Positions 5,175 through 60,647 of a stretch of DNA of 64,000 bases are shown in pieces. This DNA is from Octopus bimaculoides. Its lineage: Eukaryota. The position numbers and the translations under genes are program-made. The notes beneath the pieces are model-generated. The model was not told where the DNA came from and ran no database searches. It saw only the letters and a program-made list of their open reading frames with translations. Position 1 is the stretch's first letter. Each line of letters begins with the position of its first letter. The stretch covers positions 126,760,478 to 126,824,477 of the forward strand of contig NC_068981.1 of NCBI RefSeq assembly GCF_001194135.2, written 5' to 3'.

Positions 5175-5390
5175 GTCTGGGATGATGGTTTGAGTTCTGC
5201 TGCTGGAACATGGTCTTTAACTTGTGATTATAAAGAATACGATAAATATTTTGGACAAAACATGTACTACGATTCTGAGACAGATGATATGAAAGGTCTT
5301 GTCAAAACGGCTGTGAAAAAATGGAATGACGAGGCTGAGAAAGTGCTCAATCCGAAAGGAGCTTGTAAAGGCGATTGCAACAAAGCTCAG
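5175..5390 (+). CDS. CAP/SCP-domain (CRISP/GLIPR1/venom allergen-like) protein, internal coding exon A (phase 0-0, 72 codons)
   Basis: Pyrimidine-rich acceptor ttgttctttttcaAG at 5173-5174 and donor CAG|GTAAGT at 5391. Translation VWDDGLSSAAGTWSLTCDYKEYDKYFGQNMYYDSETDDMKGLVKTAVKKWNDEAEKVLNPKGACKGDCNKAQ matches the CAP pattern WDxxLxxxAxxWxxxC...G[EQ]N...AVxxWxxE...CxxxC..Q. Confidence 0.92.
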
Positions 5391-8300
5391 GTAAGTTTAA
5401 TTTTCATTCATTTCCCTAAAGGGATATTAAAGGAAATTTCAAGATCCTAAATGAAAACTGTGAGTAAAGTTTTAACAAAGCTTTCAAGCCTGATATTTTT
5501 GAAGTTGAAATGTTTAAATCATAACAACCACTTGATACATTTCCTCCAGTTTTTTTTTATTATTTATGATTGGTATATTATTGATACAGTGGTGTAAGGT
5601 AGTATAACTTAACATAAAGGCATTGTATTTGTATGGGAATAACAGTTATAGTTGAGTGAAGACTAACATGCAAATTTTACAGAACACCAGAATGTTTAAT
5701 TAGTTATAATAACACTCCTGTTGAATCATTAATTTTAATAATTAAAAACCATTGATTATGATATTTATGTATATATGTATGTATGTGTGTATATATATGT
5801 CCTTACATTTATATATATATATATATANNNNNNNNNNTATGTATGTATGTATGTATGTATGTATGTATGTATGTATACATTTACAATGCCTTTAGGTTTA
5901 ATTGATCTTCCTTAAAAAACTAAACTCTATCGAGCCGGTGCAAATCCAGAAATGTTTGTAATATTAAACAGAAGAGAGATAAATCTCTCCTTGCTCAAGA
6001 AGCAACCCTGTGTTAAGTAAGTTTCGTCAGGGTAAGATAATTTTATAGTGCTAGAATGGAATATGTAGTTTCAACGTACGAGTCATTTTCCTTTACCTTT
6101 GCCACAAGGTCATTTCATAATCTTTATGTGCCACCTAAATTACTTTTCAAAATATGCAAGAAGCTATTAAATTACTTCATTCCTGATAGACGTATAAATG
6201 CTTTTAAAGAAGAAATTCTCGAATGAAATTTTAAAATGTTAATGCATCAAGTTATCGAATAGTAAACAGCAAGATCTCACAGGAACCGAAGAATAAATAG
6301 TTTTAATTCTCAGTTAAAGCCAGTTCGTGGTAGCTATACCACTAATGAAAAAGTCATAAAAGATGCAGGACCCTATTCTTTTTCGTTTAAAAAATATGAT
6401 CACTTGTACTTAGAAAGAGAAAAGGCAATGATTTCATGTAAAAGAAACATTTCAGATAATTATTCAATACTTGATTTCTGTTTGGCATTTACTCTTTTAC
6501 TAATTATAGCCTTCAGATTTTGGCTCAATAAATTCATTAGAAAAAATGAAATACTTGAAAGTGAAACGTAGTTCGTAATTTTATGATCGTTTTTATGTTT
6601 ATTGGCTTGTTCAAACAGAACTGTCTGAAACTGAATTATTTAGTGTCAAAGAATCTGTAGGAATTGGAGTATCGCCTTCTCAAGTTGATCCATCTCTTAC
6701 TCTCAAACACAATTATATGGAAAGTTAATTAAATATTCTACAAACTAGTCAACACCAAGAGAATGGCAAGGATTGAGGATTGAAATAGCTTAGTACCAGT
6801 GCTTTCGCAGGAGTTTCTTCTCTAAAATACAAACTACCGCAACAGATACTACACGACATACCGTGCAATGCTTCACAAGTTCCACAAGAGTTGATCTTGG
6901 CATGAGTTAAACTTAGATAGCATATAGATGAAGCAAACATCACAAGGAATTCTAACGACTCTCTATTAAGTCAGTGAAATCCTGCCTATTAGGTGTGAAA
7001 TATATTAATCACTTAATCATTGCTCTTTTTTATAAAAACAAAAGCAGGTAAATTTATGAAAACATCAAAGGGAGGAAAAAAACCTACAACATGAGAATAT
7101 CTGTTTGTATGATCTAGACAATCTAATCAGAAACAATCCTCTTTAAGTATTAGTAATTAAATATATGTTTCTAATAACAATTAATTAATTAATCTTCTAA
7201 AGAATTGGACTTGAATTGCTACTTTTTTTATTGTTGTTTCTCTTTGGGGAAACTTGTGCATCGTTATTGTTTGTCACTAGTCGGCCATTAGTCAGGCTGA
7301 CTGATAATAAAAGCATTTTAGCTGTGATTAATTTGTCTTGCCTCTCAATGATGCCAAAAAGATCACACAATTTAATGTGCACCCGCAATAAAGAATGGAT
7401 TGATGAAGGTTTAATTGTTAATTTTAGCAGATCGAGCGGCCATGTAACGACTTCATTTATAACAAAGTCGCCTTAACATCTCTCAATCCCAGTGTTGTAT
7501 TTATTATCACTCCTTTACGCCACGTCATTTTCTCCTTATTGTTAATTAATAAACTGTTTAATTATGTAGTCATTAATAGCTGTATGATCTTAATATTTAC
7601 GAAAGTAAACCTCTGAGATCTAAACTATAATTTAATAAAGTTCAACTCGGTTCTCTTTGCTATTATATCTTTTGTTTTGAAATAGAACGGCTATTAGTAA
7701 CTGATTTAGCTTTGGAGGTTAATTTGTTTTTATAGCCAAGAAAAAAATTAGCTTGCTGCATGTGTTTATTATCTTTTTGTGAAAGATATCCACAAAAAAG
7801 TTCACTTACTACTAAATCATTCTCTCCTTCAGAAATCATTGTATCATAAAGGTCATTCTCTTTATTTGTGTATTTGTTTTAAAAAGCATTGTCTGATATT
7901 CTTTGAGTTTTCGCTTCTCTATTTTTGTATGGAAGAGCCTTTAAATATTCTCACTGATAGCACTAGTAACATTAAAAAAAATATCGTTGGTAAAAAGACA
8001 ATAGCTTTAGTCCGTTTCAGTAAGTAGGACAGATTTCAAATTGTTTTGATATGAATAATTGTACTCTACTTAAACTAAAATACAAAACAAGATCTCTTGA
8101 TCTGCTTGAAGCATTGTCATTTCTGTATATAAATACAAATGTAAAAAAAGTGGAGTTTCAACGGAATGTGACAAAACTAGCTTTATTCAATACTTCGACA
8201 TTAAAATAAATATATTTTAGTATTCCAAACCCTGATCTTAAAATGAAATGTGAAATTGCCAGTAAAGTTTATTTGATAGAATATAAAGCGAATATCATAA

Positions 8301-9370
8301 CAGTTTTACTATTGTTTACTGTTTCCTAAATATTAATTTTTTTCTGCTGAAGATTAAGAACAGGGAAAATATTTTTGATCAGAATTGTAACCTGAGACTT
8401 TTATTACTTAACTTAATATTCGTTAATCCACTTTTATGATAGCTCTCTAAGTATCCGCAAGTTCTGATAAACAAATAAAGACATTCCACGGACAAGTTTC
8501 GATCCTCAGTCGGAACACTCAACGATTTTACTCTATCCATTTTTTTAGTTCCACCAAATATTACAATTTTGAGAATTGTAAACGCTACATGACGAGAAAA
8601 TTTCAATGATATCCCACAACTCATTAAAGATCATTTATCTGGGCCAGTAAAGTTTCAGAGTTATGAGAAGATGTAGATCCTCTTTGTAAGGATCTGTTAC
8701 ACTAATGTGTATTTCGCTTCTTTGTAATGTTTTAATTACATCTTCCCATATAAATAAGGAATACATATACATTGCAACCAGTTAGTTGTTTTATATACGC
8801 GAGATAAAGATGAAAGATTTCAGTAGTAGCCCCAAAACAACACAGTGCTTTACTAGATATCCAATTCATATATTAGCTAAAGTGTATATACTGTAAATCA
8901 ACATCAGATAAAAAAAACTTTTAGCCTGAAGATAAAATATCTTCAGACAAAAGAGCAAAGTATTAGCCTTAAAAAAAAGATCAGAACTAAATGTCATGTT
9001 TTCCAACTTTCTTTGCTAGCATGTTGTAGTCTAAACAATAATAATACTCCTTAGTCGACATAAAATTCTTAATCCAAACATCAGTATAACAGGTATGACT
9101 CTATCCTCAAACTTAACGAAAATAAAGATAGTACTTGAAAATATCAAGCTTTATTAATTTCTATGATCAATACCATTTGTAGTTATGTAAACTTTATAAA
9201 GATCACTGGTTCAACAACTTCGTAAGCGCTATAATAAATCAGAACGCAAGAAATGCATGAACAGTACATTGCTACGTTGTCGCCGCAAACAATTCTCCGA
9301 CTGTGTGTCTCTCTTCCAGTAAATCTACGACTGTATGCCTATGTATAAAATTATTGTTTTATTATTAAGG

Positions 9371-58984: not shown

Positions 58985-59160
58985 ACGGGTGACTTAATAG
59001 TTAGGATGATACACTAATGAACGTAAGATTGTGGTTTCGATTCATGGACCGCGTGATGTGTTGTTTTCGTGAGCAAAACTCCATTTTACGTTGCTTCAGT
59101 CCACTCACCTGGCAAAAATGAGTAATCCTGTGACGAACCGGTGTCCCGCCCAGAAATTGG
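58985..59160 (+). mobile_element. Diverged SINE related to family C
   Basis: B box GGTTTCGATTC, then CAGTCCACTCACCTGGCAAAAATGAGT, which is shared with the reverse complement of 22110-22138. Confidence 0.65.
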
Positions 59161-60555
59161 GCTGGAGTATATACACCACAGTATCCGGGAAGCCTTGCTT
59201 ATGACTCTATGACACAGGGAGAACCTTTGATCCTTTTGTGATACACACACGCCCACCCCCATATATATTATATATATATATATATATNNNNNNNNNNNNN
59301 NNNNNNNNNNNNNNNNNNNNNNNNNNNNNNNNNNNNNNNNNNNNNNNNNNNNNNNNNNNNNNNNNNNNNNNNNNNNNNNNNNNNNNNNNNNNNNNNNNNN
59401 NNNNNNNNNNNNNNNNNNNNNNNNNNNNNNNNNNNNNNNNNNNNNNNNNNNNNNNNNNNNNNNNNNNNNNNNNNNNNNNNNNNNNNNNNNNNNNNNNNNN
59501 NNNNNNNNNNNNNNNNNNNNNNNNNNNNNNNNNNNNNNNNNNNNNNNNNNNNNNNNNNNNNNNNNNNNNNNNNNNNNNNNNNNNNNNNNNNNNNNNNNNN
59601 NNNNNTATATATATATATATATATATATATATATCACTTAGTGGACCTGGAGGACTTTTGCTAGCACTCTGCTAATATTTGACTTGAGGCCGTTTAAAGG
59701 AGAGACTTGAGCCAGGCAGGGAGGAGATTACAGAAGGCTAACATTCTGAGAAGAAAGGACTAGATACAGTGCTTAAAGCAAAGCCAAGTTTAGACACAAC
59801 AGGGGTGACGAGTGGAGGAATGACAAATGGGTCAGGAGTGCCTCAGTGGTGGAGATATGAGATCAGTCAACTCCGGGAGCAGAAGCCAGTATGTTCTTGT
59901 GCGTAAGTACGTCTTTGCATTAGACATCTATATGTGTAATGTCCGCGTGATTTGTGTTCAAAGCAAGTGAAAAAAAAAACAACAACCTTTAGAGATATAA
60001 GAAAAGAGAAAATGCAATGGGTATCTACATAAAGTAAGAAATATAGCTACAAAATAGAGAGAGAACTGATAAGAGCGAGGAAAGAGAGAAACGATGCATA
60101 CTGTTACCGAATGTAAGAAAAAAAGACTGAAAGATAAGGAGAAAGAAATATAGATTCAGTTTATTGGGAATGATAAACTTATCGTTAGACATTCTGCATC
60201 GAATAACCAAATGAAGAGAGTAGAAAATATATCAAATGATAAAGAAAAACTCGACAAATACGATGATGTTTGGCTAATGTATTAGTTATGCCTTTACATA
60301 AGTTATTGCTGGAATTTCCTTTTAATGTTGAGAAAATTTAGGAAAAATATCGGGAAAGAAAAATATTAACACAAAAATAAAATTATGGACCACTGTGAAC
60401 AAAGATATGTAGAGACCTTATAAATCTAGAGAGCATTGCATGTCGTTGTTTATATGAATAATGTTAACTGTTTCTGCACACCACTATATGTCTTGTAAAG
60501 CTAACTTTTGACAAGATGTAAAATATTTGCTTCTCTTTCTTGCTTTCTTATCTAG

Positions 60556-60647
60556 ATTACCTGAAGACACGAAGAAAATATATCAACCTGGTAAGCCTTG
60601 CTCAAAATGTCCGGAGAAAACAAAATGTGTTAACGACTTATGTTTAA
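60556..60647 (+). CDS. CAP-domain protein, coding exon C (Cys-rich hinge; phase 2-1)
   Basis: Acceptor ttctctttcttgctttcttatctAG at 60554-60555; AG from exon B plus A gives Arg. Encodes LPEDTKKIYQPGKPCSKCPEKTKCVNDLCL, the Y-x-x-G-x-P-C-S-x-C-P-x4-C-x4-C hinge of CRISP/GLIPR1-type proteins. Donor A|GTAAGT at 60648. Confidence 0.9.

Follow-up and report, generated by a model that had tools for sequence, protein, structure and literature searches.

A two-CAP-domain gene of molluscs with a histidine-less first CAP domain in Octopus bimaculoides

Introduction

Is a CAP-superfamily protein of Octopus bimaculoides, in which most of the His-Glu-Glu-His tetrad of the central cavity has been dismantled, a recent cephalopod innovation that could be linked to venom, or does it carry an old trait of a conserved gene? 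The question is raised by a 64,000-nucleotide stretch of the octopus genome (contig NC_068981.1, positions 126,760,478 to 126,824,477 of the forward strand, assembly GCF_001194135.2), hereafter the window, in which three exons encode a large part of such a protein. A preliminary description of this DNA proposed a non-metal-binding, functionally shifted CAP paralogue, possibly a secreted venom or glandular protein. The evidence assembled here makes it probable that the locus is part of a conserved molluscan gene with two CAP domains, the first of which (CAP1) has long been devoid of the two tetrad histidines, and that this state is not a venom adaptation.

An annotated, expressed and spliced gene

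The three exons of the window (X, Y and Z; coordinates in Table 1) are the middle part of an already annotated and expressed O. bimaculoides gene. Joined in frame, they code for 142 residues with 10 Cys, VWDDGLSSAAGTWSLTCDYKEYDKYFGQNMYYDSETDDMKGLVKTAVKKWNDEAEKVLNPKGACKGDCNKAQ / MLWDNTTSFGCSIRQCPTLNLGNGKVINEPTFLVCLYWP(R) / LPEDTKKIYQPGKPCSKCPEKTKCVNDLCL, where the slashes mark the exon boundaries and exon Y ends with the first two bases of the Arg codon. This peptide, which comprises the C-terminal two-thirds of a CAP domain and a four-Cys hinge, the latter encoded by exon Z, is identical to residues 52-193 of XP_014788268.2 ('GLIPR1-like protein 2', 203 residues). A word-indexed protein search with the 142-residue peptide yielded no matches; the top match of an exhaustive HMMER search was XP_029635426.1 of O. 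sinensis ('GLIPR1-like protein 1 isoform X2', 364 residues, here P0001; 94% identity, E = 1.8e-90), whose 90% cluster includes XP_014788268.2. The first 51 residues of the O. bimaculoides protein (MWMLKLLVAVQLLTLALAGG..., then HNSYR) come from one or more exons beyond the window; the N-terminus reads as a signal peptide, and the protein is probably secreted. A loose end in the RNA supplies the final 30 nt of the upstream exon, whose translation, KLSGDGVRSL, agrees with the annotated protein. In the chromosome-level assembly, the gene model extends over 146 kb, and the upstream exon and both downstream continuations were sought in the window and are absent from it.

Exon X (VWDDGLSS...GDCNKAQ, residues 52-123 of the full protein) contributes Cys68, Cys115 and Cys119 together with all four tetrad-equivalent codons, namely Glu72 (5235-5237), Gln79 (5256-5258), Glu104 (5331-5333) and Asn120 (5379-5381); the CDYKE motif is coded at 5223-5237. 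Exon Y adds Cys134, Cys139 and Cys158 as well as the sole sequon of the joined peptide, NTT (34526-34534), and exon Z adds Cys178, Cys181, Cys187 and Cys192. Two of the signature motifs, CNKAQ/MLW at the X/Y junction and CLYWPR/LP at the Y/Z junction, are split by introns and are therefore found in no single reading frame.

RNA contigs of ~1.9-2.2 kb, obtained in several runs of the same organism, match the window precisely over 5174-5390, 34511-34632 and 60554-60648. In one contig of 2177 nt, the X, Y and Z pieces lie contiguously at record positions 477-693, 691-812 and 811-905; the pieces overlap slightly because AG/G letters at the splice sites happen to coincide, and the loose ends at each exon edge in the RNA contigs are sequence of the adjoining exon. 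Because the contigs are contiguous over X-Y-Z, no exon is hidden in the assembly gaps, all inter-exon gaps are intronic and the frame is continuous. At least 18 RNA runs (4 of unrecorded kind) from six studies contain the exon. Thus, the locus is transcribed and correctly spliced, and the features that the preliminary description had read from the joined peptide (10 Cys, CDYKE, GQN, WNDE, CNKAQMLW, CLYWPRLP and NTT) are all present in a product whose exons are joined by RNA. No further CAP-like exons or tandem paralogues were detected by tblastn on either strand of the window.

The RefSeq model XP_014788268.2 is truncated. It reads through the exon-Z donor into the intron (60648-60680 on) up to a stop, ...DLCLSKYSYSHNLS (SKYSYSHNLS), whereas the examined RNA contigs continue past 60647 with GCGAAGAGCTTTCTAAAAGGTTAAGAACCCC, which translates to SEELSKRLRTP, identical to residues 194-204 of the O. 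sinensis protein; the RNA contig extends ~1270 nt past exon Z. In another RNA run, exon Z is followed by SEENVTLGYSE, that is, a 27-nt in-frame insert (EENVTLGYS, with an N-x-T sequon) that corresponds to O. sinensis isoform X1 (SEQNVTLGYSE), is constitutive in the decapodiform proteins, such as the 374-residue protein of Sepia pharaonis, and could reflect either a cassette micro-exon or the use of an alternative splice site. The second CAP domain (CAP2) of O. bimaculoides is annotated apart, as LOC106882199 (XP_014788279.2), with an artificial start (MCHCSFLIG…). The two RefSeq models appear to be one gene whose transcript would continue into CAP2, which amounts to a correction of the annotation. 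The CAP-plus-hinge extent given in the preliminary description is accurate for the window, but the fuller product has a second, better conserved CAP domain beyond it. A literature search for the accessions and for 'GLIPR1-like' in combination with octopus returned nothing relevant and no publication naming this gene.

CAP assignment and the cavity tetrad

Membership in the CAP superfamily, as originally proposed, is borne out by the match of the 142-residue peptide to the Pfam CAP profile (PF00188; E = 1.1e-10, 42.8 bits, cut-off 21.1), to which the full-length proteins score 56-93 bits, and by HMMER alignments to Na-ASP-2 and to human GLIPR1 (3q2r, E = 1.5e-8), the closest solved structure by sequence. 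In these alignments, CDYKE is placed opposite the canonical CQFSH, FGQN opposite LGEN, WNDE opposite WYDE, CNK-AQMLW opposite CGHYTQVVW, and CLYWPRLP opposite CNYGPGGN, in agreement with the correspondences first suggested; an alignment of ~200 CAP domains gave the same tetrad columns. In full-protein numbering, these columns of CAP1 hold Glu72/Gln79/Glu104/Asn120 instead of His/Glu/Glu/His, so that both His and one of the two Glu are replaced and the cation-binding tetrad is not present: one position in four is canonical, or two in four if the CAP4 variant G-Q-N is accepted.

The His-Glu-Glu-His tetrad of the cavity binds divalent cations, as in Pry1, where His208, Glu215, Glu233 and His250 are associated with Mg2+ and both Mg2+ and Zn2+ binding are described (PMC4921858). 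It is a characteristic but not an obligatory feature of the superfamily, being absent from SmVAL4 and HpVAL-4, and with such precedents a tetrad-less CAP domain is not very unusual. Among the 141 aligned CAP domains outside the two-CAP family, 57 possess the full HEEH set, 14 have HQEH and 24 are devoid of both His, a tally that is approximate, the sample being biased toward relatives of the query. Two of the motifs of Gibbs et al., as quoted in PMC4118828, are recognizable in the octopus protein: CAP3 (HNxxR) as HNSYR in the annotated upstream exon, beyond the window, and CAP4 (G(EQ)N(ILV)) as GQNM, which fits G(EQ)N and has Met, not I/L/V, in the last position. Accordingly, GQN in place of GEN, which the preliminary description had counted among the deviations, is indeed present but falls within the published CAP4 consensus; it also occurs in 32 of the 141 other CAP domains, many of which keep both His. 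Similarly, CNKAQMLW is one residue shorter, as had been stated, when compared with the vertebrate-type CGHYTQ, but not when compared with the nearest canonical molluscan CAPs, whose C-H-Y-T-Q is equal in length to C-N-K-A-Q, with Asn120 at the His position.

The protein fits neither of two familiar subfamilies. A four-Cys hinge is present, as in CRISP proteins, but the orthologues continue from it into a basic linker devoid of Cys and then a second CAP domain, not into a C-terminal six-Cys ion-channel-regulator domain (CRD); as for the GLIPR1 subfamily, the His pair is lacking, and the orthologues end in CAP2 (...QLTCIYK), which reads without a hydrophobic tail. The RefSeq name 'GLIPR1-like' reflects best-hit naming only.

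A two-CAP-domain family across molluscs

The family was explored with a full-length orthologue, with a family profile, and through the best 150 matches of the exhaustive search. The proteins of O. sinensis, O. vulgaris and Argonauta (364/373 residues) and that of S. pharaonis share one architecture, namely a signal peptide, CAP1 with the hinge, a basic linker and CAP2, and Pfam delineates two CAP stretches in the O. sinensis protein. The orthologue of Argonauta hians shows 81% identity, and two decapodiform proteins from Logan transcripts show 57-58%, one of them (58%) being that of S. pharaonis (run SRR3011300; PMC5541922). Full-length and profile searches added members from Haliotis, Gigantopelta, Ostrea, Saccostrea and Magallana. 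The CAP2 signature of the family, RC.xEYPGP..TNFGK..WG.EG..GCRTP.D..CNH...QLTCIY, was found in thirteen further proteins among the best 150 matches, from Patella, Lottia, Aplysia, Elysia, Lymnaea, Babylonia, Pomacea, Pecten and other transcriptomes; the Dreissena member is a 608-residue two-CAP protein, the representative of whose cluster, a 207-residue CAP1 fragment, is also among these 150 matches. Matches to CAP2 separate the family clearly: 12 non-octopod members have E-values of 1e-25 to 1e-48 and the two-CAP protein P0037, from a marine metatranscriptome, 6e-22, whereas every other CAP is at 1e-5 or weaker. The O. bimaculoides gene is placed in this family by its 94% identity to the O. 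sinensis member, by the RNA continuation that matches the linker of the latter, and by the CAP2 of XP_014788279.2, presumably in physical linkage with the window exons.

The 10 Cys of the window peptide are conserved without exception in 16 family members. In the alignment and the motif tables, CAP1 of every identified member is without His at both tetrad positions: the first motif takes the form C-x-Y-x-(E/V/R/S/A), and the second is C-(N/D/K/S/A)-x-x-Q in cephalopods and elsewhere mostly C-S-Y-V-Q, with variants C-(A/D/E/N)-Y-x-(Q/K). The two-CAP gene is old. Given that His-less CAP1 domains are found in O. sinensis, O. vulgaris, A. hians, S. pharaonis and the second decapodiform, the absence of the His goes back at least to the split between octopods and decapodiforms. 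The pair was probably lost before the molluscan classes diverged.

CAP2 shows much stronger conservation than CAP1, with invariant RC, YPGP, TNFGK, WG.EG, CRTP.D and CNH. In CAP2 (residues 237-364 of P0001), the invariant Glu of WG.EG and His of CNH are kept, and the other two tetrad positions are lost (C-x-x-x-Y and T-N-F-G). The linker contains a conserved, furin-like R-x-(K/R)-R|Q site, represented by RRLRRQ in octopus, KRSRRQ in Sepia, RVKRQ in oysters and RKKRQ in Dreissena. This site (residues ~222-228 of P0001; also P0169, P0174 and P0166) is common to cephalopods and bivalves and is not evident in the gastropod members; in bivalves the linker is long and rich in Arg and Glu, and that of oysters is subject to alternative splicing.

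Both the comparison between two decapodiforms and that with a close relative of the octopus point to a functional gene. Between S. pharaonis and the second decapodiform, the Nei-Gojobori ratio of nonsynonymous to synonymous divergence (dN/dS) is 0.11 both for CAP1 plus hinge and for the linker, and 0.05 for CAP2, values that are approximate given a dS of ~1; CAP1 is under purifying selection. In a close relative (organism B), the two compared exons differ by 2 substitutions in 335 nt, 5342 A>T (Lys107Asn) and 34618 C>T (synonymous, Cys158), whereas the flanking intron has accumulated ~9 substitutions in ~570 nt and four indels. A spliced transcript that includes the same upstream exon is also produced by organism B.

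Predicted fold and possible mechanism

When the AlphaFold2 model of the window peptide, a low-confidence model that is usable for fold class only and not for cavity geometry, was compared with the PDB by Foldseek, all eight matches with E <= 0.0053 were CAP proteins (TM-score 0.42-0.57, query-normalised); GLIPR1 was on top (E = 6.8e-8), and the others included the hookworm platelet inhibitor, tablysin-15, HpVAL-4 and Ac-ASP-7. CAP1 would keep the disulfide-braced alpha-beta-alpha fold and have no canonical divalent-cation site.

By analogy with SmVAL4 and HpVAL-4 (PMC4118828, PMC5893428), CAP1 would function without canonical divalent-metal binding, probably as a metal-independent module that binds a lipid or protein ligand. 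Such metal binding is not expected, since both His and one of the two Glu are replaced in this domain; the two helminth proteins likewise lack the His. The loop that follows WNDE (AEKVLNPKGAC) is free of aromatic residues; it does not look like a caveolin-binding motif (CBM), and a Pry1-type sterol loop is not evident in the sequence. A furin-type convertase would probably cut the precursor at the linker site and so separate CAP1-hinge from the more constrained CAP2. Endogenously, the protein likely has a conserved molluscan housekeeping or extracellular function rather than one in venom.

Alternative explanations

Several observations weigh against the interpretation of the locus as a conserved two-CAP gene with an old His-less CAP1. 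In O. bimaculoides RNA, the sequence past exon Z is visible for 30 nt only, and the junction of CAP1 with CAP2 is presumed; the dN/dS values carry the uncertainty given above; the AlphaFold2 models are of low confidence (pLDDT 59.8 for the full-length protein, 63.3 for the window-only peptide and <50 in the tetrad loops), which bears on the cavity geometry; and cleavage at the dibasic site as well as any ligand are pure inference. Furthermore, in the neighbor-joining (NJ) tree of CAP1, which recovers a cephalopod clade (100% bootstrap), a gastropod two-CAP clade (94%) and a bivalve two-CAP clade (95%), the cephalopod CAP1 joins canonical, tetrad-bearing molluscan CAPs (62%) and not the other two-CAP CAP1 domains, so that a single ancestral loss is not demonstrated. 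The replacing residues also differ, with E/V and N/D/K/S/A in cephalopods and R/S/A and S elsewhere, and P0037 keeps the full HEEH in its CAP1.

The last three observations are those that would be expected if the ancestral CAP1 of an ancient two-CAP gene still had the tetrad and the His were lost separately in cephalopods and in gastropods plus bivalves, and they are joined by the retention in cephalopods of the Trp of TQxxW (QMLW), which the other groups have lost (QMVF, QLIA). However, a single loss is the more parsimonious scenario, a derived Tyr at C-x-Y unites the groups (most canonical CAPs having C-x-F-x-H), GQN is common to cephalopods, Haliotis and Dreissena-type bivalves, and in the tree the bootstrap is weak and the branches are long. 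Separate losses in an ancient gene are accordingly conceivable but, in our estimate, unlikely.

A different possibility concerns the product rather than the history of the gene: the protein could be a pro-protein from which a furin-type cut frees the ultra-conserved CAP2 as an extracellular signalling or binding factor, with CAP1-hinge serving as a chaperone, a pro-domain or a second ligand-binding unit. We regard this as distinctly doubtful; if true, it would define a previously undescribed functional class of CAP proteins that spans cephalopods and bivalves.

The interpretation as a conserved molluscan gene also has to be set against one in the line of the preliminary description, namely that of a recently shifted, cephalopod-specific paralogue recruited as a venom or salivary protein, with the loss of the tetrad reflecting neofunctionalisation. 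The protein is probably secreted, as that description supposed, given the signal-peptide-like N-terminus of the annotated model; CAP/CRISP proteins are present in cephalopod posterior salivary gland venom (bioRxiv 10.64898/2026.04.09.716377); CAP is treated as a coleoid toxin class, and old venom lineages are also constrained, so that a low dN/dS does not exclude a toxin (PMC4619613); and the cephalopod CAP1 is nearer to canonical CAPs in the CAP1 tree. Nevertheless, the same architecture with a His-less CAP1 is found in non-venomous grazers and filter feeders (Haliotis, Patella, oysters, Dreissena, Pecten), a distribution that argues for an endogenous function; the His-less state is common to octopods and decapodiforms; expression is spread over the many RNA runs and studies mentioned above; and no literature ties this gene to venom. 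Among the outcomes that the preliminary description had itself named as undermining it are an untranscribed locus and substitutions shared as an old subfamily trait. The former does not apply, but the latter largely does at the level of the absence of both His, which extends across octopods, Argonauta, Sepia, gastropods and bivalves, and the idea of a functionally shifted, venom-specific paralogue is hence given up as very improbable. A degenerate CAP tetrad is not in itself evidence of recent cephalopod neofunctionalisation, and one candidate can be taken off the lists of 'venom innovations'.

Finally, the idea that the locus is decaying or non-functional, or that unrelated exons were falsely joined across gaps, which the many inter-exon gaps, the very long introns (29 and 26 kb) and the degenerate signature motifs might have suggested, has a negligible probability in view of the single RNA contigs that hold all three exons contiguously between canonical splice sites, the open frame with its 10 invariant Cys and a dN/dS of ~0.1, and the low exonic relative to intronic divergence in organism B; pseudogene and mis-assembly were rejected on this RNA and conservation evidence.

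What emerges is an uncharacterised two-CAP family across molluscs, marked by strong constraint on the second domain and by conservation of a dibasic site, that may merit functional study. Current knowledge of CAP proteins is unchallenged by it, and the gene that encodes CAP1 is an uncharacterised, ordinary addition to the known members.

Features of the window

The window is AT-rich (34% G+C) and contains 15 N runs; the gene features are listed in Table 1.

Table 1. Exons, introns and assembly gaps of the CAP gene in the window (positions counted from the first letter of the 64,000-nt stretch)
Feature	Positions	Strand	Description
Exon X	5175-5390	+	216 nt, phase 0 to 0; pyrimidine-rich AG acceptor, GTAAGT donor; RNA contigs
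Intron 1	5391-34513	+	~29.1 kb; RNA contigs go straight from 5390 to 34514
N gaps in intron 1	5828-5837, 23317-23740, 25069-25295, 27148-28080, 33015-33937
Exon Y	34514-34632	+	119 nt; pyrimidine-rich AG acceptor, GTAAGT donor; RNA contigs from three runs cover 34511-34632
Intron 2	34633-60555	+	~25.9 kb; RNA contigs go straight from 34632 to 60556
N gaps in intron 2	38553-39298, 39894-40213, 41860-42462, 43178-43561, 49364-49764, 59288-59605
Exon Z	60556-60647	+	92 nt, ends in phase 1; pyrimidine-rich AG acceptor, GTAAGT donor; RNA contigs cover 60554-60648/9
Start of next intron	60648-64000	+	RefSeq model reads into it; examined RNA contigs do not

Intron 1 contains a 192-codon open frame on the + strand (12875-13450) within an A-rich stretch (AT skew 0.216 in 12001-16000), probably a retroelement relic; a 188-residue ORF in that frame (12887-13453) gave no Pfam match. 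Scans of the window against Rfam and for tRNAs gave no matches. A low-depth RNA contig from one run (X30, 63615-63786) shows three A>G differences from the genome, at 63698, 63703 and 63722, which may result from A-to-I editing of an intronic or antisense transcript or from polymorphism. Very high RNA word depth was recorded on two short low-complexity or microsatellite-like stretches, 5035-5115 and 62160-62283; it is due to repeats common to many unrelated transcripts and not to expression of this locus.

Comparison with known CAP proteins

Human GLIPR1 (PDB 3Q2R/3Q2U) is the best structural match by both sequence and fold and resembles the octopus protein in the combination of a CAP domain with a four-Cys hinge and in the Cys spacing. 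It differs in that it possesses the full HEEH (3Q2R being a zinc-soaked structure), whereas the octopus protein has neither His and has a second CAP domain in addition. GLIPR1 also has a C-terminal membrane anchor, unlike the octopus protein, the end of which reads as non-hydrophobic.

With respect to the state of the tetrad, the closest parallels are the secreted glycoproteins SmVAL4 (PDB 4P27) and HpVAL-4 (PDB 5WEE), which turn up among the sequence or fold matches. Both are CAP domains without the metal-coordinating His, and SmVAL4 keeps one of the four tetrad residues, the same number as octopus CAP1. They are described as incapable of coordinating divalent cations while retaining sterol binding (PMC4118828, PMC5893428); in contrast to the molluscan protein, they are single-domain helminth proteins in which sterol binding via the CBM loop has been demonstrated (PMC4118828, PMC5893428).

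The two-domain arrangement is paralleled by Na-ASP-1 of hookworm, in which two CAP domains are covalently linked and the cavity of the amino-terminal one is non-prototypical; the cavity of the tetrad-less HpVAL-4 has been likened to it (PMC5893428). There is, however, no evidence of a shared duplication, and the molluscan proteins are distinguished by the hinge and by a basic linker, very long in some of them, that carries a dibasic site.

The closest relatives of CAP1 outside the family are canonical molluscan CAP-ShKT proteins, such as O. sinensis XP_029653452.1 ('CRISPLD2') and Lottia V4A6X1 (35% and 34% identity, respectively; E ~1e-20). They have the same spacing around C-x-F-x-H...GEN and C-H-Y-T-Q, and the NTT sequon is common to both groups; unlike the two-CAP proteins, they keep HEEH and end in ShKT domains rather than in a second CAP domain.

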